DNA from: Macrostomum lignano
Lineage: Eukaryota
Reading direction: 5' to 3'
NCBI GenBank assembly: GCA_002269645.1
Contig: NIVC01001223.1
Span: forward strand, 62,001-126,000
Length of the DNA: 64,000 nt
The position numbers and the translations under genes are program-made. This document shows, one piece after another, positions 1,085 to 64,000 of this stretch. The notes beneath the pieces were generated by a model, which was not told the DNA's origin, did not search any database, and saw nothing but the letters and a program-made list of their open reading frames with translations. Within the stretch, counting starts at the first letter, position 1, and every line of letters starts with the position of its first letter.

Positions 1085-1268
1085 TACCAGTTTGGTTGCC
1101 TGTCTTAGCATTTAGTGTCTGTGTCCGTCTGCGCATCTGTCTGTGCGTCTGTGTCTGTCTGTCTGTATCTGCCTGCCTGCCTGACTGTCTGTCTGTGTGT
1201 CTATATTTGCCTGTCTGTCTGTTTGCTTGTGTGCGTGTCTGTGTCTGTCTGTCTCTGCCTGCTTGCCG

Positions 1269-1317
<49 letters not shown>

Positions 1318-1430
1318 TGTATCTGCCTGTATCTGCTTGTCTGTTTGTGTGCGTGTCTGTCTCTGTATCTGTCTGTCTGTATCTGCCTGTCTGCCTGTCT
1401 GCCTGTTTGTCTGTCTGTCTGTCTGTTGAA
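1085..1430. repeat. (TG)n/(TCTG)n microsatellite in PSMC3 intron 2
   Basis: Visible low-complexity TG/TCTG tract. Confidence 0.95.
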
Positions 1431-1458
1431 ATATACAGCTGCTTAAACAATAGTATAC

Positions 1459-1965
1459 CTGAATTTGCTTATCCAGACCGCCGATATCGCTGTACTGTTC
1501 AGTTGGTCTCTCGTCCACCTCCATCGCCTTGACCCTAGAGTCGTACTCAGCCGGCAGCTTCTCCAAGATAAGGAATGAATCCTTGTTAACGCCAACCAGA
1601 TCGGCTGGTTTCAGTTCCTCCGGCGGCACTAGACCGATAACGGGCAGGAAATAAGTCTGCCTAGTGCTAGTTTTAATCACGGCCGATTTGCCCTTGCGCT
1701 GCGAGTCCAAGTCAACATTGGCGCCGTCGGCCTCTTCGGCAGCGTCAATGTCCAGCAGTTCAATTACGTTGGACACTAAATAGGGCAGCTGTTTGTTTAC
1801 TTTAATTTTTTCGGCATTCTCTTTGATCTTTTCCTTCTGAGCGCTGGTCTCGTGGCTAACCCTAGTCAACTCGGAGCGCATAATTCGTATTTCATTGTCT
1901 AGTAGCCGAGTTCGACGAACTATTTCGTCATTCGACATGCGCAGCACCTCGTCGCCAAGGTTGTC
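1459..1965 (-). CDS. PSMC3: Rpt5/PSMC3 coding exon 2 ([11 protein letters not shown]...[17 protein letters not shown])
   Basis: Highly similar to the Rpt5 coiled-coil/OB region; ggacag acceptor, CAG|gtatac donor, phase 0 at both ends. Confidence 0.97.
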
Positions 1966-7826: not shown

Positions 7827-8284
7827 TTTGTTTGATAAAGATGTGTTTAGAATATAGTTTATTATTCTTAGAACTAGAAGCTAGTTACTAGTTTCAGATC
7901 TATAGACTATAGTATTAAAAGTCTTAGTAGTATACTATATCTATATCGCCTAACTAATCAATCAAGAAATTTGAAAAAAAGAAAGACAGCAAAAATACAC
8001 TCGGTTATCAAAACAGGATAAATTAACAGACTTTATTCAGTTCAGTTTAATTCAGCGCAAAAATTTGTGGAAAATGTGTGCATGTGAATTATAATTACGG
8101 ACCAACGAACATTTAAACAGCGATTAAGCTAGATTAACAAATATTTCAGCTTTTCGCAAAACTTTCTATTCATGCCAAAACATTGATCAACATTCGAAAA
8201 AAATATTCAACTTTATTAATAAATAAATCCTAATGCCTGTCTTGAAGATAAAAATTACATATTTTTAAATTGAGTGAAAATTCA

Positions 8285-8350
8285 ATAAACTCCGCGTAAC
8301 TCGTGCGGCCGGCGCACGCGAGATGCTGCAGTCAAGGTCAGGATAATCAG
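8285..8350. promoter_or_regulatory. GC/CpG-rich core of a probable bidirectional promoter between PSMC3 and AP3M
   Basis: Isolated CpG-rich patch (tccgcgtaactcgtgcggccggcgcacgcgag) in AT-rich DNA between divergent ATGs at 7826(-) and 8496(+). Confidence 0.6.
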
Positions 8351-8495
8351 GCTCTCCACGTTTAAAAGTGTGTTAGAATGATTCTACTTTAGTTTAAATA
8401 CGTATAGTGACGTTAGATAAAAAAATTTCTTGTGTTTAGAAAAAATATATATTAGTAGACTTAAGCGCAGCAGCTAACATTAGTAACAAAGAGCC

Positions 8496-8530
8496 ATGAT
8501 ACATAGTATTTTCTTTATAAACAATTCGGG
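8496..8530 (+). CDS. AP3M1: AP-3 complex mu subunit exon 1 (MIHSIFFINNS-G)
   Basis: Matches the mu3 N-terminus MIHSLFLIN; GG|gtaagt donor. Confidence 0.92.
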
Positions 8531-10317
8531 GTAAGTAAGCAGTGAAGACAGTTACTTAGCTCTGTTTCTAAAATATATTGAATGAAAACATTCTCAATCT
8601 CTCTGTATTAATTTAAGTCTAATAATTATTTACTTATTTATCTCATCTAATTTATTTAGCCTTATAGCATTGTTGCTATTTTTATTCATTTGTAACAAAA
8701 CTCTGTTGATAATAAAAATATATCATTAGTTTAGCATAAGCTGTACTTCGTTCTATCTATTAATGTTTTTTATCAGTGAATGATCTGCCTTATCTAATTA
8801 AGCTAAAAAATACTATATTTTTAAGGTTTATAGATCTATTAAAGTCAGGACATCAAGAAGATCAGAGTAGATTCTAGTATTAGACAAGATCAGATCAGAG
8901 TAGTTAATAAATCTATTGATTTATCAACAATATTGATCTACAATAGGCCTAAACCAATATGCTTTATTTTCTTAATCTAATAATATTCAGGTCAAACTTT
9001 ATATAATCCAAAAGATGGTACATGAGAAAATAGCAATTTGTTTTTTTGATAAATAAATTGTGCATTCTGTTAGCCTATTATGAATATGCTATGCATGCAA
9101 GTACAATTCACTTATTGTATATTATACAATATACATTCTACAGGCCCTACAAGTAGATATAAATATATATATAAAAATATAACTATATTATAAATGTCAT
9201 TTTTTAATCAAATGATAGCCTAAGCTCACTCAAGTTCAAACTCACCTTACCACTACCTATCCCCTCCTCTACTCTATATTATTATATATTTCTTTATTTA
9301 TTCTACTAAAATCTCTTCAACTCACATTTACTTTTTTACTTCTAATACTAACTTCTATTGAATTTGCTGCTTAAAAACACAAAACTTATACTATGTCAAG
9401 AAAAGTTGTTTTGCCAAAATGACTATTTTCTATAAAAGCTACTTAATAAAAAAGTTGCCAAAGTCAAGACAAGGTTATATACAAGACAGTATGTAATGAA
9501 CTAGAGTTATATCTGTTCTTTCTAAGAATTCTATTCACTTATCTACCCCTATCACATAGTCATAACCTAAAGATCATAACCTAAAAGATTATACCTAAAA
9601 GCATTTTGCCACATTAGTTAGACTATGTTAAAATTAAGTGCATTATGCAACTTTTACTATAAACTAATTTTATTTTTATATATTTCAAAATTGTATCCTC
9701 AAATTAGACCTTGAATATGATTTTGCATTTTGCCACTAGTTAAAAACCTAGATGATAAAACAAAATGGTTAGTTAGTTGAAGAAATAAATACATGACAAA
9801 TTAATTCTTAATCAGAATAGTGGACAAAAGCAGAGTTATATCTATTAGCCCACCATATTGTTTCTATAATTATTGTTTATGATATAATACTCAGTAGTTC
9901 TATCTCGCTTAAATTATTGTATTTTATACTTTAGGGCAAATATCCCTTTTTTTAATTTAGATTTCTATAAAAAGGAACTTTTTTAGACAATTCCTTTCTA
10001 TAATTTTTTCCTTATTTTTCTTTTAGTAGCAAAATGCCATAGCCCACAGGGTATCCCCTGAAAAACTTTGCTTTACCAAAATAAATAAATTCAAGCAAAA
10101 ATCAATAAGTATATATGAAATATGAAATATTCTTTTTTATGTACCTTTTAAACAAGATCAAGTTGCCAGACTCTAGGTTCTAGATATTGATCTAGATTTT
10201 ATCCATTACTATTTTATTCTTATACATAATAGCTTCTGCCCATTTTCTGAGCAGAAAATGGCCTCCTTAAGTTCAACTAGCTAGTGTTTTAAAGCCAGTA
10301 TGCCTTATTAATTTTAG

Positions 10318-11790: not shown

Positions 11791-12202
11791 GCGACATCTT
11801 GCGGCCAGTGTTGCTCGAGTACGGCGTCACAGTGTCTGTTGGATCGCTACAGAGACTGCGACTGCTTGGCGGAGGTGCTCCAGTCACTTGATCAAGAGCG
11901 GCCAAAGTCGGTCCAGACAATGCAGCTTCAGCAACTGCCTTTTTCGGCTTATCCGCCCAGCCTTGCGACTTCTTCCTCTTTCCCAAAATGAATAACTTTT
12001 AGGAGAGGCGGTTTGACTCTGCCTTGCAAGCTGAGCTGTACTTGTTCCAAAAAAGATGATTTGCATGGATCTGGATGGAAAATTATATTGAGAATTGTGA
12101 TTAGGTTCCTAAGTAACCATGGGTATTAAAATTCAGCTGAATCCAACAATGAGAAGTGCATTTTTCCGAGAACTCAACAAGCACCTCTATCACTATCCCC
12201 AG

Positions 12203-12728
12203 CTACTAGACGAAGTCCTTGATAACGGCTTCCCCCTAGCAACGGAGTCCAATATCCTCAAAGAGCTAATCCGGCCGCCTAACCTGCTGCGCAGCTTGGC
12301 GGACACCATGACCGGCCGGAACTCCACCGTATCGGCCACGCTGCCAACCGGCCAGCTGTCCAACATTCCGTGGCGGCGTAGCGGTGTGAAATACGCCAAC
12401 AACGAAGCCTATTTTGATATTGTTGAAGAGCTGGACGCAATCGTTGATAAATTTGGCGGCGCTGTCTGCGCTGAGGTGCACGGCAGCATCGACTGCCTCA
12501 TCAAATTGTCCGGCGTCCCGGATCTCACGCTCAGCTTCGTGAACTCGCGCCTGATTGAAGACGCCAGCTTGCATCCGTGCGTCCGGCACAGGCGATTCGA
12601 AGTTGAACGCCTGCTTAGCTTTGTACCGCCGGACGGCGGCTTCAGACTGATGGCCTATAGGGCCAGTTGCCATGGCAACCTGCCCGTACCGCTCGACCTG
12701 CGTCATACGATTAGCTTCAAACAGGCTA
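12203..12728 (+). CDS. AP3M1: AP-3 mu exon 4 (LLDEVLDNGFPLATESNILKELI...ISFKQA)
   Basis: ccccag acceptor, A|gtaagt donor; mu-homology domain motifs IPWRR.GVKY.NNEAYFD and LSFVPPDG. Confidence 0.97.
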
Positions 12729-13047
12729 GTAAGTTCATATGAAACAGCTATGGGGCCCATTGTATACTCATGTTTCCTGTAATTTACACCAATTACTATT
12801 GCCATTAGATCCAATATACGAAAAAATGATTATGTTGAACCATATATCTAGGTTAGCTATGTTATTGAATTTGAAGTCTCACGAAAGTAGAAAAGCCTTT
12901 AACAGTCACTAGTACTGCTCCCAGATCTGCAGAATCGCCTTTAACAGTCACTAGTACTGCTCCCAGATCTCTTATTACAGAAGCATTTTCATATTTGCCG
13001 TGAAAACCTATCTAATTGCTCCCACCACGGGCCAAACTGTTTCCCAG

Positions 13048-13444: not shown

Positions 13445-14015
13445 GGCTTCAAACACTTAAACTCACAATCCCTAAACCTCACAAACCCTAAACCTCACAA
13501 ACCCTAAACCTCACAATCCCTAAACCTCACAATCCCTAAACCTCTCAATCCCTTAACCTCACAAACCCTAAACCTCACATTCCTTAAACCTCACAATCCC
13601 TAAACCTCACAAACCCTAAACCTCACAATCCCTAAGCCTCACAATCCCTAAACCTCACAATCCCTAAACCTCACAATCCCTAAACCTCACAATCCCTTAA
13701 CCTCACAATCCCTTAACCTCACAATCCCTAAACCTCACAATCCCTTAACCTTACAATCCCTTAACCTCACAAACCCTAAACCTCATATTCCTTAAACCTC
13801 ACAATCCCTAAACCTCACAATCCCTAAGCCTCACAATCCCTAAACCCCACAATCCCTTAACTTTACAATCCCTTAACCTCACAATCCCCTAACCTCACAA
13901 TCCTTAAACCTCACAATCCCTAAACCCCACAATCCCTTAACTTTACAATCCCTAAACCTCACAATCCCCTAACCTCACAATCCTTAAACCTCACAATCCC
14001 TAAACCTCACGATCC
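13445..14015. repeat. 16-bp minisatellite (CCTCACAATCCCTAAA) in AP3M intron 5
   Basis: Direct inspection. Confidence 0.95.
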
Positions 14016-16409: not shown

Positions 16410-18585
16410 TAAGATTCACAACCTCCCAGATTCACAACCTCCCAGATTCACAACCTCCCAGATTCACAGCCTCCCAGATTCACAGCCTCCCAGATTCACA
16501 ACCCTCCCAGCTTCACAACCTCCCAGATTCACAACCTCCCAGATTCACAGCCTCCCAGATTCACAACCTCCCAGATTCACAACCCTCCCAGCTTCACAAC
16601 CTCCCAGATTCACAACCTCCCAGATTCACAGCCTCCCAGATTCACAACCCTCCTAGATTCACAAACCTCCTACCGGTATATTCACAACATCGCAGATTCA
16701 CAACCTCCCAGATTCACAACCTCCCAGATTCACAACCTCCCAGATTCACAACCTCCCAGATTCACAACCTCCCAGATTCACAACCTCCCAGATTCACAAC
16801 CTCCCAGATTCACAACCTCCCAGATTCACAACATCGCAGATTCACAACCTCCCAGATTCACAACCTCCCAGATTCACAACCTCCCAGATTCACAACCTCC
16901 TACCGAAAGATTCACAACCTCCCAGATTCACAACCTCCCAGATTCACAACCTCCTACCGAAAGATTCACAACCTCCTACCGAAAGATTCACAACCTCCCA
17001 GATTCACAACCTCCCAGATTCACAACCTCCCAGATTCACAACCTCCCAGATTCACAACCTCCCAGATTCACAACCTCCCAGATTCACAACCTCCCAGATT
17101 CACAACCTCCTACCGGAAGATTCACAACCTCCCAGATTCACAACCTCCCAGATTCACAACCTCCCAGATTCACAACCTCCTACCGAAAGATTCACAACCT
17201 CCCAGATTCACAACCTCCCAGATTCACAACCTCCTACCGAAAGATTCACAACCTCCTACCGAAAGATTCACAACCTCCCAGATTCACAACCTCCTACCGA
17301 AAGATTCACAACCTCCCAGATTCACAACCTCCCAGATTCACAACCTCCCAGATTCACAACCTCCCAGATTCACAACCTCCCAGATTCACAACCTCCTACC
17401 GGAAGATTCACAACCTCCCAGATTCACAACCTCCCAGATTCACAACCTCCCAGATTCACAACCTCCTACCGAAAGATTCACAACCTCCCAGATTCACAAC
17501 CTCCCAGATTCACAACCTCCTACCGAAAGATTCACAACCTCCTACCGAAAGATTCACAACCTCCCAGATTCACAACCTCCCAGATTCACAACCTCCTACC
17601 GAAAGATTCACAACCTCCCAGATTCACAACCTCCCAGATTCACAACCTCCCAGATTCACAACCTCCCAGATTCACAACCTCCCAGATTCACAACCTCCTA
17701 CCGGAAGATTCACAACCTCCCAGATTCACAACCTCCCAGATTCACAACCTCCCAGATTCACAACCTCCTACCGAAAGATTCACAACCTCCTACCGAAAGA
17801 TTCACAACCTCCCAGATTCACAACCTCCCAGATTCACAACCTCCTACCGAAAGATTCACAACCTCCCAGATTCACAACCTCCCAGATTCACAACCTCCTA
17901 CCGAAAGATTCACAACCTCCCAGATTCACAACCTCCCAGATTCACAACCTCCCAGATTCACAACCTCCTACCGAAAGATTCACAACCTCCCAGATTCACA
18001 ACCTCCCAGATTCACAACCTCCCAGATTCACAACCTCCCAGATTCACAACCTCCCAGATTCACAACCTCCCAGATTCACAACCTCCCAGATTCACAACCT
18101 CCCAGATTCACAACCTCCTACCGAAAGATTCACAACCTCCCAGATTCACAACCTCCCAGATTCACAACCTCCCAGATTCACAACCTCCCAGATTCACAAC
18201 CTCCTACCGGAAGATTCACAACCTCCCAGATTCACAACCTCCCAAATTCGCAACCTCCCAGATTCACAACCTCCTACCGGAAGATTCACAACCTCCCAGA
18301 TTCACAACCTCCCAGATTCACAACATCGCAGATTCACAACCTCCCAGATTCACAACCTCCCAGATTCACAACCTCCCAGATTCACAACCTCCCAGATTCA
18401 CAACCTCCTACCGGAAGATTCACAACCTCCCAGATTCACAACCTCCCAAATTCGCAACCTCCCAGATTCACAACCTCCTACCGGAAGATTCACAACCTCC
18501 CAGATTCACAACCTCCCAGATTCACAACCTCCTACCGGAAGATTCACAACCTCCCAGATTCACAACCTCCCAAATTCGCAACCAA
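16410..18585. repeat. Mixed 16-bp (AGATTCACAACCTCCC) / 22-bp (AGATTCACAACCTCCTACCG[A/G]A) tandem array
   Basis: Direct inspection. Confidence 0.95.
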
Positions 18586-20500: not shown

Positions 20501-21060
20501 TCAATTGGCCAAGTAGATCACCTGGTGGCGCTCCATCAACTCGATGTCGCGCTCCAGCTGCTTCATCTCGCTCTCGATTCGCTCTTTGCGGTTCTTCTTG
20601 GGCACCGTGTCGGTCATGACGCTCAGCGACTGGTACTGGTGGTGCAGATCCTCCCAGTTCTTCTTCAGGCCGAACACGATGGCTTGGCGCTCCTCGTCAG
20701 TCAGCTGCTGCATGGCGCCCCGTTGCCGCATCTCCTTCACGTAGTTGTCGTATTCCTCCTGGGCCCGCCGGATCTCGTCGGCTCGCTTCTTCAGATACTC
20801 GGGCACCTCGCCGTAGTCTTTGCGGTTCCGGTAAACCGGCTCCAGGCCGCTCGGGTCCAGCGAGAACTTGTCGCCTTTGCGCGAGTCAACCAGATTCTTC
20901 TCCGGCTTCTTCGCCACGGACAGGATGTTCTCAACGGCGTTCTGGGCGATGAAGTTCTTCTTGGTCTTGATGCCCATCACTGGGGGCGCCTCGTTCGCCT
21001 TCGGCACGGGCGGCCGGCGGGGCTGACTCGACCTATCGTGCTCGTTCGGGTCGACGACAA
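20501..21060 (-). CDS. ENKUR: Enkurin exon 3 (VVDPNEH...PPVPKANEAPPVMGIKTKKNFI...LERDIELMERHQVIYLAN*)
   Basis: Enkurin domain (KDYGEVPEYL, GLKKNWE..H.YQSLSV); ccatcag acceptor; TGA stop. Confidence 0.95.
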
Positions 21061-29751: not shown

Positions 29752-30930
29752 ATGGACTTGGGATTTTGGACTTGGGATTTGGGACTTGGGATTTGGGACT
29801 TGGGATTTGGGACTTGGGATTTGGGACTTGGGATTTGGGACTTGGGATTTGGGACTTGGGATTTGGGACTTGGGATTTGGGACTTGGGATTTGGGACTTG
29901 GGATTTGGGACTTGGGATTTGGGACTTGGGATTTGGGACTTGGGATTTGGGACTTGGGATTTGGGACTTGGGATTTGGGACTTGGGATTTGGGACTTGGG
30001 ATTTGGGACTTGGGATTTGGGACTTGGGATTTGGGACTTGGGATTTGGGACTTGGGATTTGGGACTTGGGATTTGGGACTTGGGATTTGGGACTTGGGAT
30101 TTGGGACTTGGGATTTGGGACTTGGGATTTGGGACTTGGGATTTGGGACTTGGGATTTGGGACTTGGGATTTGGGACTTGGGATTTGGGACTTGGGATTT
30201 GGGACTTGGGATTTGGGACTTGGGATTTGGGACTTGGGATTTGGGACTTGGGATTTGGGACTTGGGATTTGGGACTTGGGATTTGGGACTTGGGATTTGG
30301 GACTTGGGATTTGGGACTTGGGATTTGGGACTTGGGATTTGGGACTTGGGATTTGGGACTTGGGATTTGGGACTTGGGATTTGGGACTTGGGATTTGGGA
30401 CTTGGGATTTGAGACTTGGGATTTGGGACTTGGGACTTGGGACTTGGGACTTGGGACTTGGGATTTGGGACTTGGGATTTGGGACTTGGGATTTGGGACT
30501 TGGGATTTGGGACTTGGGATTTGGGACTTGGGATTTGGGACTTGGGATTTGGGACTTGGGATTTGGGACTTGGGATTTGGGACTTGGGATTTGGGACTTG
30601 GGATTTGGGACTTGGGATTTGGGACTTGGGATTTGGGACTTGGGATTTGGGACTTGGGATTTGGGACTTGGGATTTGGGACTTGGGATTTGGGACTTGGG
30701 ATTTGGGACTTGGGATTTGAGACTTGGGATTTGAGACTTGGGATTTGGGACTTGGGATTTGGGACTTGGGATTTGGGACTTGGGACTTGGGACTTGGGAT
30801 TTGGGACTTGGGATTTGGGACTTGGGATTTGGGACTTGGGACTTGGGACTTGGGATTTGGGACTTGGGATTTGGGACTTGGGATTTGGGACTTGGGATTT
30901 GGGACTTGGGATTTGGGACTTGCGATTTGA
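29752..30930. repeat. 14-bp satellite (GGGACTTGGGATTT), made of two heptamers; G-quadruplex-type pattern
   Basis: Direct inspection. Confidence 0.97.
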
Positions 30931-38366: not shown

Positions 38367-38984
38367 CTCTGCTTCAACAAGCAGGACCTGCTGCTGCACA
38401 ACAGCTCAGTGCACAAGGCCGACCCGAGGCCATTCCAGTGCGACACCTGCGGCAGGCAGTTCGCCACGGCCGCTTACCTGTGCCAGCACCGCCGCATTCA
38501 CACCGGACAGCGGCCGTACGGCTGCAAGTACTGCGACAAGCGGTTCACCCAGCTGTCGCACGTGCAGCAGCACGAACGAATTCACACGGGCGACAAGCCC
38601 TACCGCTGCTGGCACTGCGCCAAAAGTTTCACCCAGATGAGCAACCTGCAGAGCCACCAGCGCCAGCACACCAAGGACAAGCCGCACCGCTGCGACGCCT
38701 GTCACATGTGCTTCGACTCCAGGGAGGAGCTGGACACCCACGCCGCCGCCAGGCACAGCACCAACAAGTACAGCCGGGTGCTGCTCTGCCGGGTGTGCGG
38801 CAAGGCCTACAACTCCGAGACTTATCTTAGCAAGCACCTGGCCAAGCACCGGGACAAGGCCAGGCAGGCGGAGCATCAGCAGCTTCAGCAGCAGCAGCAG
38901 CAGCAACAGGCTGCAGAGTTTGCCGCACATCGCTCGCCTCTGCCGCCGCCTCCGCCGCCTCCGCCACAGCTGCCGCCACCGCCT

Positions 38985-39018
<34 letters not shown>

Positions 39019-39260
39019 TTCATCAGCACCTTCACCACCATCATCACCACCACCAGGCGACGTTGTCTCAGTCGACGTCGAGTTCTTCGCCTCCGACTGG
39101 ACACGCGGCCGCTGCCGCCGCCGCCGCTGCCGCAGCCGCTGCGGCCGCCGGAGGCTACTCAACGGCCTTCCACGGTGGCGTCCCGTTCCACACCGCGCAG
39201 GCTGCGGCGGCTGCTGCGGCGGCGGCCGGGCCCGCTGGACCGTTCAAGTTCGCCTTCTAG
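38367..39260 (+). CDS. ZNF362: lin-29/rotund/ZNF362-384-family exon 2: rest of finger 1, fingers 2-6, then poly-Q/P/H/A tail
   Basis: ctaccag acceptor; diagnostic motifs TQLSHVQQH, TQMSNLQSHQRQHTKDKP and CGKAYNSETYLSKHLAKH; TAG stop. Confidence 0.9.
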
Positions 39261-42028: not shown

Positions 42029-45000
42029 GATCTGGGATCTGGGATCTGGATCTGGGATCTGGATCTGGGATCTGGATCTGGGATCTGGATCTGGGATCTG
42101 GATCTGGGATCTGGATCTGGGATCTGGATCTGGGATCTGGATCTGGGATCTGGATCTGGGATCTGGATCTGGGATCTGGATCTGGGATCTGGATCTGGGA
42201 TCTGGATCTGGGATCTGGATCTGGGATCTGGATCTGGGATCTGGATCTGGGATCTGGATCTGGGATCTGGATCTGGGATCTGGATCTGGGATCTGGATCT
42301 GGGATCTGGATCTGGGATCTGGATCTGGGATCTGGATCTGGGATCTGGATCTGGGATCTGGATCTGGGATCTGGATCTGGGATCTGGATCTGGGATCTGG
42401 ATCTGGGATCTGGATCTGGGATCTGGATCTGGGATCTGGATCTGGGATCTGGATCTGGGATCTGGATCTGGGATCTGGATCTGGGATCTGGATCTGGGAT
42501 CTGGATCTGGGATCTGGATCTGGGATCTGGATCTGGGATCTGGATCTGGGATCTGGATCTGGGATCTGGATCTGGGATCTGGATCTGGGATCTGGATCTG
42601 GGATCTGGATCTGGGATCTGGATCTGGGATCTGGATCTGGGATCTGGATCTGGGATCTGGATCTGGGATCTGGATCTGGGATCTGGATCTGGGATCTGGA
42701 TCTGGGATCTGGATCTGGGATCTGGATCTGGGATCTGGATCTGGGATCTGGATCTGGGATCTGGATCTGGGATCTGGATCTGGGATCTGGATCTGGGATC
42801 TGGATCTGGGATCTGGATCTGGGATCTGGATCTGGGATCTGGATCTGGGATCTGGATCTGGGATCTGGATCTGGGATCTGGATCTGGGATCTGGATCTGG
42901 GATCTGGATCTGGGATCTGGATCTGGGATCTGGATCTGGGATCTGGATCTGGGATCTGGATCTGGGATCTGGATCTGGGATCTGGATCTGGGATCTGGAT
43001 CTGGGATCTGGATCTGGGATCTGGATCTGGGATCTGGATCTGGGATCTGGATCTGGGATCTGGATCTGGGATCTGGATCTGGGATCTGGATCTGGGATCT
43101 GGATCTGGGATCTGGATCTGGGATCTGGATCTGGGATCTGGATCTGGGATCTGGATCTGGGATCTGGATCTGGGATCTGGATCTGGGATCTGGATCTGGG
43201 ATCTGGATCTGGGATCTGGATCTGGGATCTGGATCTGGGATCTGGATCTGGGATCTGGATCTGGGATCTGGATCTGGGATCTGGATCTGGGATCTGGATC
43301 TGGGATCTGGATCTGGGATCTGGATCTGGGATCTGGATCTGGGATCTGGATCTGGGATCTGGATCTGGGATCTGGATCTGGGATCTGGATCTGGGATCTG
43401 GATCTGGGATCTGGATCTGGGATCTGGATCTGGGATCTGGATCTGGGATCTGGATCTGGGATCTGGATCTGGGATCTGGATCTGGGATCTGGATCTGGGA
43501 TCTGGATCTGGGATCTGGATCTGGGATCTGGATCTGGGATCTGGATCTGGGATCTGGATCTGGGATCTGGATCTGGGATCTGGATCTGGGATCTGGATCT
43601 GGGATCTGGATCTGGGATCTGGATCTGGGATCTGGATCTGGGATCTGGATCTGGGATCTGGATCTGGGATCTGGATCTGGGATCTGGATCTGGGATCTGG
43701 ATCTGGGATCTGGATCTGGGATCTGGATCTGGGATCTGGATCTGGGATCTGGATCTGGGATCTGGATCTGGGATCTGGATCTGGGATCTGGATCTGGGAT
43801 CTGGATCTGGGATCTGGATCTGGGATCTGGATCTGGGATCTGGATCTGGGATCTGGATCTGGGATCTGGATCTGGGATCTGGATCTGGGATCTGGATCTG
43901 GGATCTGGATCTGGGATCTGGATCTGGGATCTGGATCTGGGATCTGGATCTGGGATCTGGATCTGGGATCTGGATCTGGGATCTGGATCTGGGATCTGGA
44001 TCTGGGATCTGGATCTGGGATCTGGATCTGGGATCTGGATCTGGGATCTGGATCTGGGATCTGGATCTGGGATCTGGATCTGGGATCTGGATCTGGGATC
44101 TGGATCTGGGATCTGGATCTGGGATCTGGATCTGGGATCTGGATCTGGGATCTGGATCTGGGATCTGGATCTGGGATCTGGATCTGGGATCTGGATCTGG
44201 GATCTGGATCTGGGATCTGGATCTGGGATCTGGATCTGGGATCTGGATCTGGGATCTGGATCTGGGATCTGGATCTGGGATCTGGATCTGGGATCTGGAT
44301 CTGGGATCTGGATCTGGGATCTGGATCTGGGATCTGGATCTGGGATCTGGATCTGGGATCTGGATCTGGGATCTGGATCTGGGATCTGGATCTGGGATCT
44401 GGATCTGGGATCTGGATCTGGGATCTGGATCTGGGATCTGGATCTGGGATCTGGATCTGGGATCTGGATCTGGGATCTGGATCTGGGATCTGGATCTGGG
44501 ATCTGGATCTGGGATCTGGATCTGGGATCTGGATCTGGGATCTGGATCTGGGATCTGGATCTGGGATCTGGATCTGGGATCTGGATCTGGGATCTGGATC
44601 TGGGATCTGGATCTGGGATCTGGATCTGGGATCTGGATCTGGGATCTGGATCTGGGATCTGGATCTGGGATCTGGATCTGGGATCTGGATCTGGGATCTG
44701 GATCTGGGATCTGGATCTGGGATCTGGATCTGGGATCTGGATCTGGGATCTGGATCTGGGATCTGGATCTGGGATCTGGATCTGGGATCTGGATCTGGGA
44801 TCTGGATCTGGGATCTGGATCTGGGATCTGGATCTGGGATCTGGATCTGGGATCTGGATCTGGGATCTGGATCTGGGATCTGGATCTGGGATCTGGATCT
44901 GGGATCTGGATCTGGGATCTGGATCTGGGATCTGGATCTGGGATCTGGATCTGGGATCTGGATCTGGGATCTGGATCTGGGATCTGGATCTGGGATCTGG

Positions 45001-45129
45001 ATCTGGGATCTGGATCTGGGATCTGGATCTGGGATCTGGATCTGGGATCTGGATCTGGGATCTGGATCTGGGATCTGGATCTGGGATCTGGATCTGGGAT
45101 CTGGATCTGGGATCTGGATCTGGGATCTG
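42029..45129. repeat. 13-bp satellite (CTGGGATCTGGAT), about 238 apparently identical copies
   Basis: Direct inspection. Confidence 0.98.
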
Positions 45130-53151: not shown

Positions 53152-53204
53152 CTTGACGTGGGTTTTATTATCGATTTATAGATTTTGTCAGATTGTGGCT
53201 GATT

Positions 53205-56200
53205 TTGAGCCCGATTAGCCAACCAATATTGACAGTTTTTGAGCCCGATTAGCTAACCAATATTGACAGTTTTTGAGCATAATTAGCCAACCAATATTGA
53301 CAGTTTTTGAGCCTAATTAGCCAACCAATATTGGCAGTTTTTGAGCCCGATTAGCCAACCAATATTGACAGTTTTTGAGCCCGATTAGCTAACCAATATT
53401 GACAGTTTTTGAGCCTAATTAGCTAACCAATATTGACAGTTTTTGAGCCCGATTAGCCAACCAATATTGACAGTTTTTGAGCCTAATTAGCCAACCAATA
53501 TTGACAGTTTTTGAGCCTAATTAGCTAACCAATATTGGCAGTTTTTGAGCCCGATTAGCCAACCAATATTGACAGTTTTTGAGCCTAATTAGCCAACCAA
53601 TATTGACAGTTTTTGAGCCCGATTAGCCAACCAATATTGGCAGTTTTTGAGCCTAATTAGCCAACCAATATTGGCAGTTTTTGAGCCCGATTAGCCAACC
53701 AATATTGACAGTTTTTGAGCCCGATTAGCCAACCAATATTGACAGTTTTTGAGCCTAATTAGCCAACCAATATTGGCAGTTTTTGAGCCCGATTAGCCAA
53801 CCAATATTGACAGTTTTTGAGCCCGATTAGCCAACCAATATTGGCAGTTTTTGAGCCCGATTAGCCAACCAATATTGACAGTTTTTGAGCCCGATTAGCC
53901 AACCAATATTGGCAGTTTTTGAGCCTAATTAGCTAACCAATATTGACAGTTTTTGAGCCCGATTAGCCAACCAATATTGACAGTTTTTGAGCCTAATTAG
54001 CCAACCAATATTGGCAGTTTTTGAGCCCGATTAGCCAACCAATATTGGCAGTTTTTGAGCCCGATTAGCCAACCAATATTGGCAGTTTTTGAGCCCGATT
54101 AGCCAACCAATATTGACAGTTTTTGAGCCCGATTAGCCAACCAATATTGGCAGTTTTTGAGCCTAATTAGCTAACCAATATTGACAGTTTTTGAGCCTAA
54201 TTAGCTAACCAATATTGACAGTTTTTGAGCCTAATTAGCTAACCAATATTGACAGTTTTTGAGCCCGATTAGCCAACCAATATTGACAGTTTTTGAGCCT
54301 AATTAGCCAACCAATATTGGCAGTTTTTGAGCCCGATTAGCCAACCAATATTGACAGTTTTTGAGCCCGATTAGCCAACCAATATTGACAGTTTTTGAGC
54401 CCGATTAGCCAACCAATATTGGCAGTTTTTGAGCCTAATTAGCTAACCAATATTGACAGTTTTTGAGCCTAATTAGCTAACCAATATTGACAGTTTTTGA
54501 GCCTAATTAGCTAACCAATATTGACAGTTTTTGAGCCTAATTAGCCAACCAATATTGACAGTTTTTGAGCCTAATTAGCCAACCAATATTGACAGTTTTT
54601 GAGCCTAATTAGCCAACCAATATTGGCAGTTTTTGAGCCCGATTAGCCAACCAATATTGACAGTTTTTGAGCCCGATTAGCCAACCAATATTGACAGTTT
54701 TTGAGCCCGATTAGCCAACCAATATTGGCAGTTTTTGAGCCTAATTAGCTAACCAATATTGACAGTTTTTGAGCCTAATTAGCTAACCAATATTGACAGT
54801 TTTTGAGCCTAATTAGCTAACCAATATTGACAGTTTTTGAGCCCGATTAGCCAACCAATATTGACAGTTTTTGAGCCTAATTAGCCAACCAATATTGGCA
54901 GTTTTTGAGCCCGATTAGCCAACCAATATTGACAGTTTTTGAGCCCGATTAGCCAACCAATATTGACAGTTTTTGAGCCCGATTAGCCAACCAATATTGA
55001 CAGTTTTTGAGCCTAATTAGCTAACCAATATTGGCAGTTTTTGAGCCCGATTAGCCAACCAATATTGGCAGTTTTTGAGCCTAATTAGCTAACCAATATT
55101 GACAGTTTTTGAGCCTAATTAGCTAACCAATATTGACAGTTTTTGAGCCTAATTAGCTAACCAATATTGACAGTTTTTGAGCCTAATTAGCCAACCAATA
55201 TTGACAGTTTTTGAGCCTAATTAGCCAACCAATATTGGCAGTTTTTGAGCCCGATTAGCCAACCAATATTGACAGTTTTTGAGCCCGATTAGCCAACCAA
55301 TATTGACAGTTTTTGAGCCCGATTAGCCAACCAATATTGGCAGTTTTTGAGCCTAATTAGCTAACCAATATTGACAGTTTTTGAGCCTAATTAGCTAACC
55401 AATATTGACAGTTTTTGAGCCTAATTAGCTAACCAATATTGACAGTTTTTGAGCCTAATTAGCTAACCAATATTGACAGTTTTTGAGCCTAATTAGCTAA
55501 CCAATATTGACAGTTTTTGAGCCTAATTAGCTAACCAATATTGACAGTTTTTGAGCCTAATTAGCTAACCAATATTGACAGTTTTTGAGCCTAATTAGCT
55601 AACCAATATTGACAGTTTTTGAGCCCGATTAGCTAACCAATATTGACAGTTTTTGAGCCTAATTAGCTAACCAATATTGACAGTTTTTGAGCCTAATTAG
55701 CTAACCAATATTGACAGTTTTTGAGCCTAATTAGCTAACCAATATTGACAGTTTTTGAGCCTAATTAGCTAACCAATATTGACAGTTTTTGAGCCTAATT
55801 AGCTAACCAATATTGACAGTTTTTGAGCCCGATTAGCTAACCAATATTGACAGTTTTTGAGCCTAATTAGCTAACCAATATTGACAGTTTTTGAGCCTAA
55901 TTAGCTAACCAATATTGACAGTTTTTGAGCCCGATTAGCCAACCAATATTGACAGTTTTTGAGCCTAATTAGCTAACCAATATTGACAGTTTTTGAGCCT
56001 AATTAGCTAACCAATATTGACAGTTTTTGAGCCTAATTAGCTAACCAATATTGACAGTTTTTGAGCCTAATTAGCTAACCAATATTGACAGTTTTTGAGC
56101 CTAATTAGCTAACCAATATTGACAGTTTTTGAGCCTAATTAGCTAACCAATATTGACAGTTTTTGAGCCCGATTAGCTAACCAATATTGACAGTTTTTGA

Positions 56201-56355
56201 GCCTAATTAGCTAACCAATATTGACAGTTTTTGAGCCCGATTAGCTAACCAATATTGACAGTTTTTGAGCCTAATTAGCTAACCAATATTGACAGTTTTT
56301 GAGCCCGATTAGCCAACCAATATTGGCAGTTTTTGAGCCCGATTAGCTAACCAAT
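53205..56355. repeat. 34-bp minisatellite (GAGCC[CG/TA]ATTAGC[C/T]AACCAATATTG[A/G]CAGTTTTT), about 92 copies, in the first coding intron of ZDHHC
   Basis: Period 34. Confidence 0.98.
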
Positions 56356-61374: not shown

Positions 61375-64000
61375 TTAACCTTTCGGCTGACGTTTGTATA
61401 TAACTAGTCGAGCATCTGACGAAATATTTTTCAGCAAAGACGTAGAAGTGCTTAGCTCTGTGGTCATTAGATCGTCCAGCAAGTAGCATATGTCACCTTT
61501 TGATGGAAATACATAAGCGACGTAATGACCTTCGTCGACTCGTTCTCCCAGGTGCACAATCACACTTTAGAGGCAATAGCGCTGATTGTTATAGTCAATT
61601 TCTGGCGTTAAATCGAAGCCCACTCGGTTCTTGACAATAGTTGCCTGGCTTCTCAAGAGCCTGTTCACGACGAAGCACAGGAGAGGTGGCGCATTTTGAG
61701 GAGTTCTGCTATGAACGCAGCTACTTGTCTGACAGGCTGTGCATGTGATGTCATCAGACTCGTCCGGTCGTAGTGCCGCATTCACAAGCTGAATCAGCTG
61801 CTGTCCTTCAACTGGTTGAACCACCACGAATGTTTCATGCAAACTTTCAGTAGTCGCGGCATTATTGCACCGGAGACATAGGGTGGACCCGCCGAGCTAA
61901 AATAATAAAGCCAAACAGCTGAGACGGAATTGAAAACATCGATTTAAAGTGCCTGTACTCTCTTACTGCCATCTATGCTGTACGTGTCCGATCCTGGATT
62001 CATATTTGTTTACATGTATTTGCCTCTTTTTACTACATTAGTTCCCTATGATATTGTCGTTTCAAATGGTTTCCGTTCAAAAAGTAAAGCAAGTTTCTGT
62101 ACTCGTAAGTGCTTTTTGAAATTTAGAAACGAGAAGTATTACCTGAATTCTAAACTGGCGACGAATAGTCTGCAGCTTTTGAGAAATGAGCACGAAAAAT
62201 TCAAAGCAGTCGTTATATTCGTTGGTATTTATTTGACCAGCCGTACAGCATTCTTCCAATGCAGTGTTGTACAAATATTCGCTGAATCCAGATCTGCTCG
62301 AAATGTTGGCCAAGAGTCGTATAAGAAAGGACGAATTCACGGCTGTTTCAGAAAAATTTCTCCCTGACAATGCCGCACCAACTGCGTGAAGACTGGCGTT
62401 GAACCAACAGAGTTTTCCATTACGATTGGGTAGGCCGAATGGACGATAGCCTGATGTCGATAGCGCCGAAGCTTCGACAGTAACAAAACTGGCGACATGA
62501 TCAGAACAATCAACAAAAGCATGAGCGGCTGGCTCGTTTATCACTGTTGGCAGTGGCGGATCTAGGATTTTATTTAAGGTGGGCGGTCCAAGTTTGTGGC
62601 GCAACATGAGTATGAGGGGCGCCAATTTTTAAGCTAGGGGCGCAAAAAATGCGTGTAGGGGGCGAAAAATCAAGTTTAAAGGGCACAAACTTAGGTTTTT
62701 TGGGGGGGGGGCAATATGTTTCATCCAGCTGTTTCGGGGGGGGGGGGGGCGCTCCCCCCCCCCCCCCCCCCCTAAATCCGCCCCTGACTGTTGGTATTCG
62801 TGGAAACTCACCATTGCTACGGTTAGCAGACTCACAAGTTATAGATTCATGTGCACGTTCATGACGCCAAAGCTTATTTTGTTCGATGCGTTCCTCTCGA
62901 GAAAATCCTTTGCGTCGACGTCCCTTATTCGATCGAGAAGCTTTTAAGATTTTGCCGATTCCTACAGGCTTCTCGGCAACTCGGGGCAATCCAATTTTTC
63001 GTCTAACCGCTGCGATATGCGAACACGATTGAGCAGAGACACAAGAACACGAAGCAACGCCGTTGCTAAATGTCACAACATTATTTCGTCCGGCAACGTT
63101 AGTCACTATGAAGTTACCAAGAGTAGGGTTGAATGAAACTTTATGTTGCTCACTAAGCAAGCTGATCCGTGTCGACTGTTCGTTGTCGTCTAGATCGACA
63201 TTAACTCGCACAGATTTGTGGCTAGATTCTCCAACGGGCTGGTGAACAGGAGTACCAGTAGCATCATTGGACAATGAAGGCCCCGTGCCACCTGACTCAT
63301 TGCTGTTGCTATCATAGAAACTCATGTTGGGACGTATGACAGTCACTTTAATCGCACCAATTTCTCGAATTTCTCGAGTCGCTGAAGTCTGAGAGTGCCG
63401 GCGTTGAATGTTCGCAGCTATTTGTTCTAACGACAACGATGGAGAGAGTGTTACAGTTTCGGGCGACTGTTGTAGATGTTGGAACTCCGGCTTTAGTGTA
63501 GTTTCCTTGGCCACACAAACCACGAAGAATTTCGTTCCTGTAGTATCGAGAAGTTTGGTAAAGTCCGACAATGCAGTCATCGATCGTTGCATCCTTGAAG
63601 TTAAGCACACGCTTGAGCATTGCGTTTATTGATTCTGATTGGTTCTGAGTTACACCGGTAACTGGGCAGTAGTGCGATTGTAGAATCCACTTTGCAAAAA
63701 ATTTAGGGATTAATGGGTGAATTTGATTGTCAAAATAAGCGGCAAAACTTGGATTCCAGTTTTTTTTGCAGCTTGCATACTGGGCATTGTACTGCTCGAT
63801 GCTGTCTGTTTCTAGCAGGGAGAGTAGATCTGCTGAAATCATGTCTTCATCAGCCGATGTTCCACCGTTCTTGCGAATCCAGAACCGGACGTCCCGCTTC
63901 AGATGGTTCCAGCATCCCAAAAATCGGATATTGGGGAAGACAGAAGCCATCGAATTTCTCAGCCCAATTTCTCCATCCATAACGCATGCCACATTAGTAG
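61375..64000 (-). pseudogene. Decayed Mutator-like (MULE) transposase - SWIM finger - USP/C19-like peptidase gene; its 5' part lies beyond the window
   Basis: MULE motifs (VMDGEIGLRNSMASVFPNIRFLGCWNH; TQNQSESIN), SWIM CSC-x5-CSH, USP Cys box (GLPNRNGKLCWFNASL) and His box (IVHLGERVDEGHYVAYV..YLLDD); one frameshift (near 63497), one MITE insertion, one in-frame stop (61567-61569) and a GT-AG intron at 61897-62142. Confidence 0.85.
62551..62786. mobile_element. 236-bp hAT-type MITE inserted in the MULE ORF
   Basis: TIRs CAGTGGCGGATCTAGG / CCTAAATCCGCCCCTG; 8-bp TSD ACTGTTGG at 62543-62550 and 62787-62794. Confidence 0.93.

Follow-up and report, generated by a model that had tools for sequence, protein, structure and literature searches.

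Does an animal Mutator-like element (MULE) encode a complete ubiquitin-specific protease (USP, family C19) in the reading frame of its own transposase? The question is raised by one end of a 64,000-nt stretch of Macrostomum lignano DNA (GenBank assembly GCA_002269645.1, contig NIVC01001223.1, forward-strand positions 62,001 to 126,000; hereafter the window, with positions counted from its first letter), where the element in question lies on the minus strand, from 64000 down to 61375. Here, one conceptual minus-strand frame leads from a MULE transposase core through a SWIM-like CxCx6CxH finger and a basic stretch to a USP (C19) domain, with interruptions by a 2-bp frameshift, a 236-bp hAT-type miniature inverted-repeat transposable element (MITE), one TAA codon, and a GT-AG intron. 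This arrangement had been proposed in an initial annotation made from the letters alone; all of the elements listed there were found at their given positions on the minus strand, confirming the observation and supporting its interpretation. The locus is probably a decayed copy of an autonomous animal MULE with a full C-terminal USP domain in its transposase frame, a reading to which we assign a probability of roughly 0.8. Its parts, with terminal inverted repeats abbreviated as TIRs and the target-site duplication as TSD, are the following:

63498..64000, minus strand (read 63998-63498): C-terminal part of the MULE DDE core (piece A), from phmmer and alignment to relatives.
63496..63498, minus strand: frameshift (2-bp deletion) between ...GQGNY and LKPEF..., from alignment to relatives.
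62787..63496, minus strand: variable linker, SWIM-like finger, and basic stretch resembling a nuclear localization signal, KGRRRKGFSREERIEQ (piece B), from alignment.
62551..62786, no strand assigned: hAT-type MITE of 236 bp in the coding sequence, from its TIRs and TSD.
62543..62550, with a second copy at 62787-62794, no strand assigned: MITE TSD, CCAACAGT in minus-strand reading, from the direct repeat.
62143..62542, minus strand: USP exon 1 (piece C), with Cys box GLPNRNGKLCWFNASL, catalytic Cys codon at 62409-62407, and QQD-type box NEYNDCFEFF, from alignment.
61897..62142, minus strand: GT-AG intron of 246 bp, phase 0, with a pyrimidine-rich acceptor, from the sequence and the homologous intron of a relative (locus L002).
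61378..61896, minus strand: USP exon 2 (piece D), with CLRC...CTAC zinc ribbon, PPLLCFVVNR, His box VIVHLGERVDEGHYVAY, and YLLDD, from Pfam UCH and alignment.
Sites within USP exon 2, minus strand: His codon at 61527-61525; YLLDD at 61476-61471; premature TAA at 61569-61567.
61375..61377, minus strand: natural stop TAA, about 10 codons past the end of the USP domain, with no PHD finger after it.

In translation, piece A reads ...ACVMDGEIGL...FLGCWNHLKRD...GVTQNQSESINAMLKR...RGLCGQGNY. After the shift of frame, piece B opens with LKPEFQHL..., passes through a low-complexity linker, VTFSNGVASCSCVSAQSCSHIAAVRRKIGLP, and the basic stretch KASRSNKGRRRKGFSREERIEQNK, and ends in ...EFPRIPTV; piece C contains GLPNRNGKLCWFNASLHAV and NEYNDCFEFF and terminates with ...RRQFRIQ at the GT, and piece D contains CLRC, CTAC, PPLLCFVVNR, YCL-TAA-SVIVHLGERVDEGHYVAYV, and YLLDD. 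Each of the four repairs that had been proposed to join these pieces is backed by alignment to relatives. At the frameshift junction, the DNA gives GQGNY, A, CTA AAG CCG GAG TTC (NY-x-LKPEF); two relatives span this point with NYRLKPEF (P0020) and NFQLRPQF (P0003), identifying the lesion near 63497 as a 2-bp deletion. Once 244 bp (the MITE and one copy of the repeat) are taken out, the frame is exactly restored, with RIPTV joined to INEPAAH. The premature TAA aligns with a Lys position in an intact relative, P0050 (FLKSAIVHLG), and the intron lies 6-7 codons ahead of the first CxxC in the USP zinc ribbon. The window copy is dead, given its 2-bp deletion, the nonsense codon inside the USP, and the MITE in its coding sequence. 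The element continues past the window edge at 64000, with the N-terminal half of the transposase and the first catalytic D lying outside the window.

The transposase part was compared with known proteins through an exhaustive HMMER search, in which the 711-residue conceptual product (frameshift and stop both written as X) was run against 1.84 billion representative proteins. phmmer returned 916 relatives at E<=1e-3, 277 of them at <=1e-10 (best 4e-42), and nearly all of the 916 cover residues 1-200, with a second matching stretch at the SWIM region. The core residues claimed in the initial annotation proved well placed: the second D (in MDGE), CWNH (the CxxH motif), and the E of QSESIN align with the relatives' conserved D(R/G)E, CWNH, and SES.N columns. 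Further along, CSCVSAQSCSH at 63049-63017 aligns with the CxCx6CxH of relatives, and the basic stretch with their basic KSGRKKPR block. The predicted SWIM domain was borne out by motif and alignment and not by Pfam score, as SWIM (PF04434) had no match in the window piece even at E<=1; the finger is therefore best called SWIM-like. A Pfam census of 54 long relatives gave MULE in 30, CG-1 in 13, Peptidase_C48 in nine, PHD in seven, SWIM in three (e.g., P0137 at 22.6 bits), and UCH in one. CG-1 is the DNA-binding domain of CAMTA proteins. Its matches fall on the N-terminal DNA-binding region of the MULE clade (90-395 in L002; 13 of the 54 relatives), which hints at a link between CG-1 and the DNA-binding domain of MULEs.

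That the C-terminal part belongs to the USPs, as had been claimed, is supported by Pfam UCH (PF00443), which matches the joined exons at 43 bits (E 5e-11) and exon 2 alone at 39.5 bits, against a gathering cut-off of 23.9. A single-sequence search of the PDB with the window USP part found nothing at E<=0.01. With a profile built from the three USPs borne by MULEs (the window copy and the two relatives described below), the search matched 88 PDB sequences, all of them USPs (USP14, 36, 28, 12, 46, 15, 8, 7, and 30); the best E was 5e-8. The Cys box GLPN..CWFN aligns with GLTNLGNTCYMN of USP14, and VHLG....GHYVAY....DD aligns with THQG....GHYVSW....KFDD of the same enzyme. The Cys, His, and Asp motifs of the proposed catalytic triad are thus retained, together with the Cys4 zinc ribbon. 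The CWFN Cys box was also considered as a signature of MULE-borne USPs and was rejected, being present in an unrelated USP gene (L008).

Is the fusion of MULE and USP genuine, or does it arise from the repairs? A local phmmer search with the window USP part against the 150 best relatives led to three proteins, P0050, P0087, and P0013. P0050 (ENA assembly ERZ25039471, locus L001) is a 729-residue protein read from a single uninterrupted open reading frame (ORF) that requires no editing. Its order is a MULE core with HD...DRE...CWNH...CES.N, then CSCSFRFSCWH, a basic stretch, and a USP (Pfam UCH, 57 bits); it is without an intron at the position of the window's intron, and the L001 copy is frameshifted in its N-terminal part. 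P0087 (Logan assembly of SRR24204725, locus L002; 628 residues) spans the MULE domain to the Cys box in one ORF, which continues via CDCKNSPRCCH and a basic stretch into GLPNFGETCWFNSGIQC and stops at a GT. About 200 bp past this GT, an AG opens the exon RTTYSICEVCKC...GVCANCG, of the CEVC...CANC type; the intron between them matches that of the window both in phase (0) and in place, preceding the first CxxC by 6-7 codons. The third protein, P0013, was rejected as a MULE-USP relative, as it derives from an unrelated tandem array of USP17-like units in a pocket gopher.

The order MULE core, SWIM, basic stretch, and USP recurs in at least three sequences with mutual identities below 35%. On this sequence evidence, the MULE-USP fusion is genuine, and intact members of the group are predicted to make it as one polypeptide. 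The expectation that other copies would link the two parts is borne out by the uninterrupted ORF of P0050 and by P0087 with its next exon. A word-indexed protein search with the SWIM-to-USP alignment returned P0087 only, and no further MULE-USP loci emerged from two metagenome scans and one viral-contig scan; the second metagenome scan gave two ordinary USP genes without a MULE part (L007 and L008), and the first and the viral scans were empty. For the closest relative, P0001, and for P0062, the contig stops before the point at which a following USP would come into view.

Two of the proteins set aside above have features of their own. P0013 (NCBI KAM4815304.1, Thomomys bottae) is a 3205-residue "low quality" protein composed of ten identical 321-residue USP17-like units, evidently the product of reading through a tandem array of USP17-type genes, and surfaced through the summing of ten weak USP matches. 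The USP gene at 2100-3300 of L008 (contig Ga0209542_10000395, 106 kb, 23% GC) lacks introns and any MULE part, has CWFN in its Cys box, and includes a long region of QEEAQRK-type repeats; its contig is metagenomic and very AT-rich, possibly from a protist or a giant virus.

What do relatives carry at the position occupied by the USP? Among the 150 best relatives, about 21 contain a C48 domain by iterated local hidden Markov model search, often with a PHD finger; examples are P0003 (CG-1, MULE, SWIM, C48, PHD) and P0048, and on the contig of P0005 a C48 ORF directly follows the transposase ORF. In the window, neither a Pfam scan nor tblastn detected C48, and the USP takes its place; tblastn of the window likewise found no Ulp1, OTU, PHD, or N-terminal MULE sequence. 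P0050 retains the KKSG.KK...D.D..APDS block that C48-type relatives have just upstream of the protease, which points to the same backbone and to a swap downstream of this block. The third type of protease accompanies P0004, located on a 382-kb contig (L006) beside a RING/B-box gene, a neighbour that marks the contig as part of an animal genome. P0004 lies inside a complete 5.56-kb element (L006 7351-12906) whose TIRs, each about 80 nt long, start with GGGAGTCACTAAAACCCGG and include GGAAC repeats; the element holds the transposase ORF (8001-9755) and, on the same strand and within the TIRs, an OTU ORF (11899-12462; Pfam OTU, 40.7 bits). An outer inverted repeat in L006 (7269-7292 / 13606-13629) suggests that this element is nested in another transposon.

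A neighbor-joining tree built from 175 columns of the transposase core in 33 taxa, with 100 bootstraps, placed the window copy as sister to P0001 (98/100), and this pair adjoins P0002 and the OTU-linked P0004; deep branches were poorly resolved. The one specific link among the MULE-borne USPs is the intron position that the window copy shares with P0087. As judged from these domain matches, the MULE clade carries a C48, an OTU, or a USP protease. It is conceivable, and somewhat short of an even chance, that the C-terminal protease of this animal clade is an exchangeable cassette (Ulp1/C48, OTU, or USP), with the USP version acting as a working, transposase-tethered deubiquitinase. If true, a USP-class enzyme would for the first time be shown to provide an accessory function for a transposon, and there would be evidence that MULE transposition in animals needs the removal of ubiquitin-family marks.

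Protease-carrying MULEs are themselves known. Mutator elements bearing Ulp1, with or without a PHD finger, have been described from Hydra, the lancelet Branchiostoma, and plants (KI-MULEs/VANDAL-type) (PMC2836005), and the statement in the initial annotation that some MULEs carry Ulp1/C48 proteases accords both with this work and with the C48-bearing relatives found here. These elements resemble that of the window in belonging to the same transposase clade and in combining the core, SWIM, a basic stretch, and a cysteine protease of a ubiquitin-like system; however, the window protease is a USP (clan CA, C19) whereas theirs is Ulp1 (clan CE, C48), and the window element is without the PHD finger of many Ulp1/C48 MULEs and without any C48 remnant in the window. 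OTU-carrying DNA transposons include MULE transposases of Medicago (PMC1702500), Ginger1, and Helitron/Helentron elements (PMC2836005). Like the window element, they are DNA transposons with a deubiquitinase-type cysteine protease, and the L006 element falls in the same sub-branch; they differ in protease family, and in L006 the OTU has an ORF of its own, 2.1 kb downstream of that for the transposase.

A closer precedent for the protease itself comes from Trichomonas vaginalis, in which XP_001314237.1 joins an IS5-like transposase_11 to a peptidase C19 (PMC2836005). As far as its published description goes, this protein shares with the window a C19/USP-type hydrolase and a DDE transposase, but it belongs to the IS4/IS5-like superfamily, not Mutator, and to a protist host; a USP in a DNA transposon is thus not wholly unprecedented. 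The VTD domains of Helentrons are likewise transposon-encoded proteases with all catalytic residues in place, and experiments have established that they are active as deubiquitinases, which have been proposed to shield the proteins of transposition from degradation (PMC9741609). Unlike the window USP, VTD has an unrelated fold and active-site topology, and its carriers are rolling-circle elements, not cut-and-paste MULEs. Cellular USPs (USP14, USP36, USP28, USP12/46, USP7, and USP17-like) align with the window domain in the Cys box, QQD-type box, Cys4 ribbon, His box, and Asp, whereas the window USP is very divergent (best PDB profile E 5e-8), is fused to a transposase, and is without other USP accessory domains. 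USPs form the largest deubiquitinase family. Literature searches, with Repbase reports outside their reach, found no paper on a USP/UCH in a Mutator element; a USP within a MULE is an addition to the known protease-carrying MULEs.

What might the protease do? To our knowledge, nobody has determined the role of the Ulp1, OTU, and VTD proteases in DNA transposition. Members of the clade carry a CG-1-like DNA-binding region at the N-terminus, followed by a DDE core with CxxH, a SWIM-like finger, a basic stretch, and a C-terminal cysteine protease, which in most relatives is Ulp1/C48. Tethered to the transposase, the protease may enter the nucleus by means of the basic, nuclear-localization-like stretch and there strip the transposase itself of ubiquitin or of a ubiquitin-like modifier. 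Alternatively, its substrates could be proteins of chromatin or of repair located where the element is excised or integrated (donor or target site). In either case, the USP may assist transposition in the way that Ulp1, OTU, and VTD modules would in other DNA transposons; this role is proposed because relatives carry Ulp1 or OTU at this place, because other superfamilies carry Ulp1, OTU, and VTD, and because the VTD domains of Helentrons are active deubiquitinases. The interchange of three unrelated deconjugating folds at one position suggests that deconjugation, and not polyprotein self-processing, has been selected.

Several results weigh against the identification of the locus as a USP-bearing transposon, or against the role proposed for the protease. 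The window fragment scores just below the Pfam cut-offs for its transposase (Transposase_mut, 20 vs 21 bits; MULE, 15.7 vs 27.6), so that the expected Pfam profile was recovered for UCH and not for MULE, an outcome attributable to the presence of only half a domain in the window. No second copy of any piece occurs within the window, and nothing convincing was found there by way of MULE TIRs, the 5' end lying outside. A word-indexed protein search gave no paralogue of the 711-residue conceptual protein, with an index that is insensitive at 25-35% identity. USP-bearers number three, vs about 21 C48-bearers, and their monophyly on the transposase core was unsupported (0/100), which leaves a single coherent "USP-MULE family" unproven and allows for repeated gain or exchange of the USP. 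AlphaFold2 models from four-row alignments reached a predicted local distance difference test (pLDDT) score of 36.6 for the window USP and 36.0 for that of P0050, too low for use, and the support for the USP fold comes from sequence alone. Finally, deubiquitinase activity and its role in stabilizing the transposase or altering chromatin marks are things that we infer.

Some of these absences also suit a domesticated MULE-derived host gene, or its pseudogene, in which an immobile DNA-binding/SWIM scaffold of transposase origin would have acquired a USP. MULE transposases have repeatedly been domesticated (FAR1/FHY3, MUSTANG), and the presence of introns, the single copy in the window, the lack of visible TIRs and TSDs, and the missing close paralogues would all be in keeping with such a gene. 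A TIR search in L001 and L004 also gave nothing convincing. Yet the coding sequence of the window copy contains a frameshift, a stop, and a MITE, and the N-terminal part of L001 carries frameshifts of its own; together, these lesions fit decaying transposon copies better than a maintained host gene. The window copy lacks the intact reading frame of a USP/UBP member, which P0050 has, and the conserved host gene that had been named as an alternative is not what the window holds, since the locus is a pseudogene. The catalytic D, CxxH, and E motifs are moreover kept, a TIR-bounded element stands among the closest relatives, and the relatives are patchy and highly divergent in the manner of transposons. 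We consider domestication quite improbable. Even less credit is due to a one-off capture or juxtaposition, by which a MULE would have come to lie beside a host USP (pseudo)gene or a Pack-MULE-style fragment, the continuous frame being an artefact of repair. MULEs do take up fragments of host genes (PMC6431247), the window frame requires four edits, and the C-terminal half of the window USP is about as close to the ordinary USPs of L007 and L008 as to P0050. Against this, P0050 shows the same order in an uninterrupted ORF with zero edits, the single ORF of P0087 spans MULE core to Cys box, and each edit is independently backed (TSD-exact excision, frameshift alignment, Lys at the TAA, shared intron position); what is more, the domain is a whole USP with all catalytic motifs and no mere fragment.

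The main functional rival accepts the transposon fusion but holds that the USP-fold domain is self-processing, releasing the transposase, or is specific for SUMO, NEDD8, or an ISG15-like modifier. In its favour, the domain diverges strongly from cellular USPs: it has no single-sequence match in the PDB and reaches 14 bits per unit with a USP17-like protein, and the module that it replaces in relatives is a SUMO-type protease. Cellular USPs, on the other hand, are overwhelmingly ubiquitin-specific. Processing has been proposed as the role of the OTU-fused MULE transposases of Medicago (PMC1702500), whereas the VTD modules borne by Helentrons are true deubiquitinases (PMC9741609). Three deconjugase folds at one position would also fit a shared deconjugation of ubiquitin or ubiquitin-like proteins better than three solutions to self-processing. 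We therefore regard this rival as unlikely, though as a more serious contender than domestication or capture.

With the locus read as a decayed USP-bearing MULE, the finding adds USP to the proteases borne by transposons, in one MULE clade and at the position of its relatives' Ulp1 or OTU. This exchange of domains in nature limits what the module could do and favours deconjugation of a ubiquitin-like mark over self-processing, and the three-way exchange of proteases within one clade makes this function experimentally approachable, which should interest specialists in both transposons and ubiquitin. The 729-residue ORF of P0050 offers a small, intact, expressible test case for the modifier and the substrates of a transposase-tethered protease. 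Caution is also called for in annotation, as MULE-USP genes may pass for host USP genes.

The MITE that interrupts the window copy ends in CAGGGGCGGATTTAGG and the reverse complement of CAGTGGCGGATCTAGG, which form 16-bp TIRs with 14 of 16 positions identical; the degenerate TIR CAGKGGCGGATYTAGG fits both ends, giving 2 matches vs 0.11 expected. Short TIRs, an 8-bp TSD, and the lack of coding capacity mark it as hAT-type, and no further copy was found within the window. At 62728-62781, the MITE contains a G17/C14 palindrome, GGGGGGGGGGGGGGGGGAGCGCCCCCCCCCCCCCC, which would make a strong hairpin.

Elsewhere, the window contains exons of host genes:

1201-1947, minus strand: proteasome Rpt5/PSMC3, 84% identity to the best protein match; closest named matches from a spider (83%) and a barnacle (80%), in line with an invertebrate host.
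12119-12742, plus strand: adaptor-complex medium (mu) subunit.
20501-21007, minus strand: enkurin-domain protein.
38409-39260, plus strand: C2H2 zinc-finger protein with poly-Q and poly-A tails.

Minisatellites are unusually dense between 3 and 56355, where at least 15 arrays with 13-43-bp units occur (e.g., 42029-45129, 53203-56355, 16412-18583, and 29754-30929), including 3.1 kb of a 13-bp unit at 99% identity and 3.2 kb of a 34-bp unit; these arrays give rise to many long spurious ORFs.

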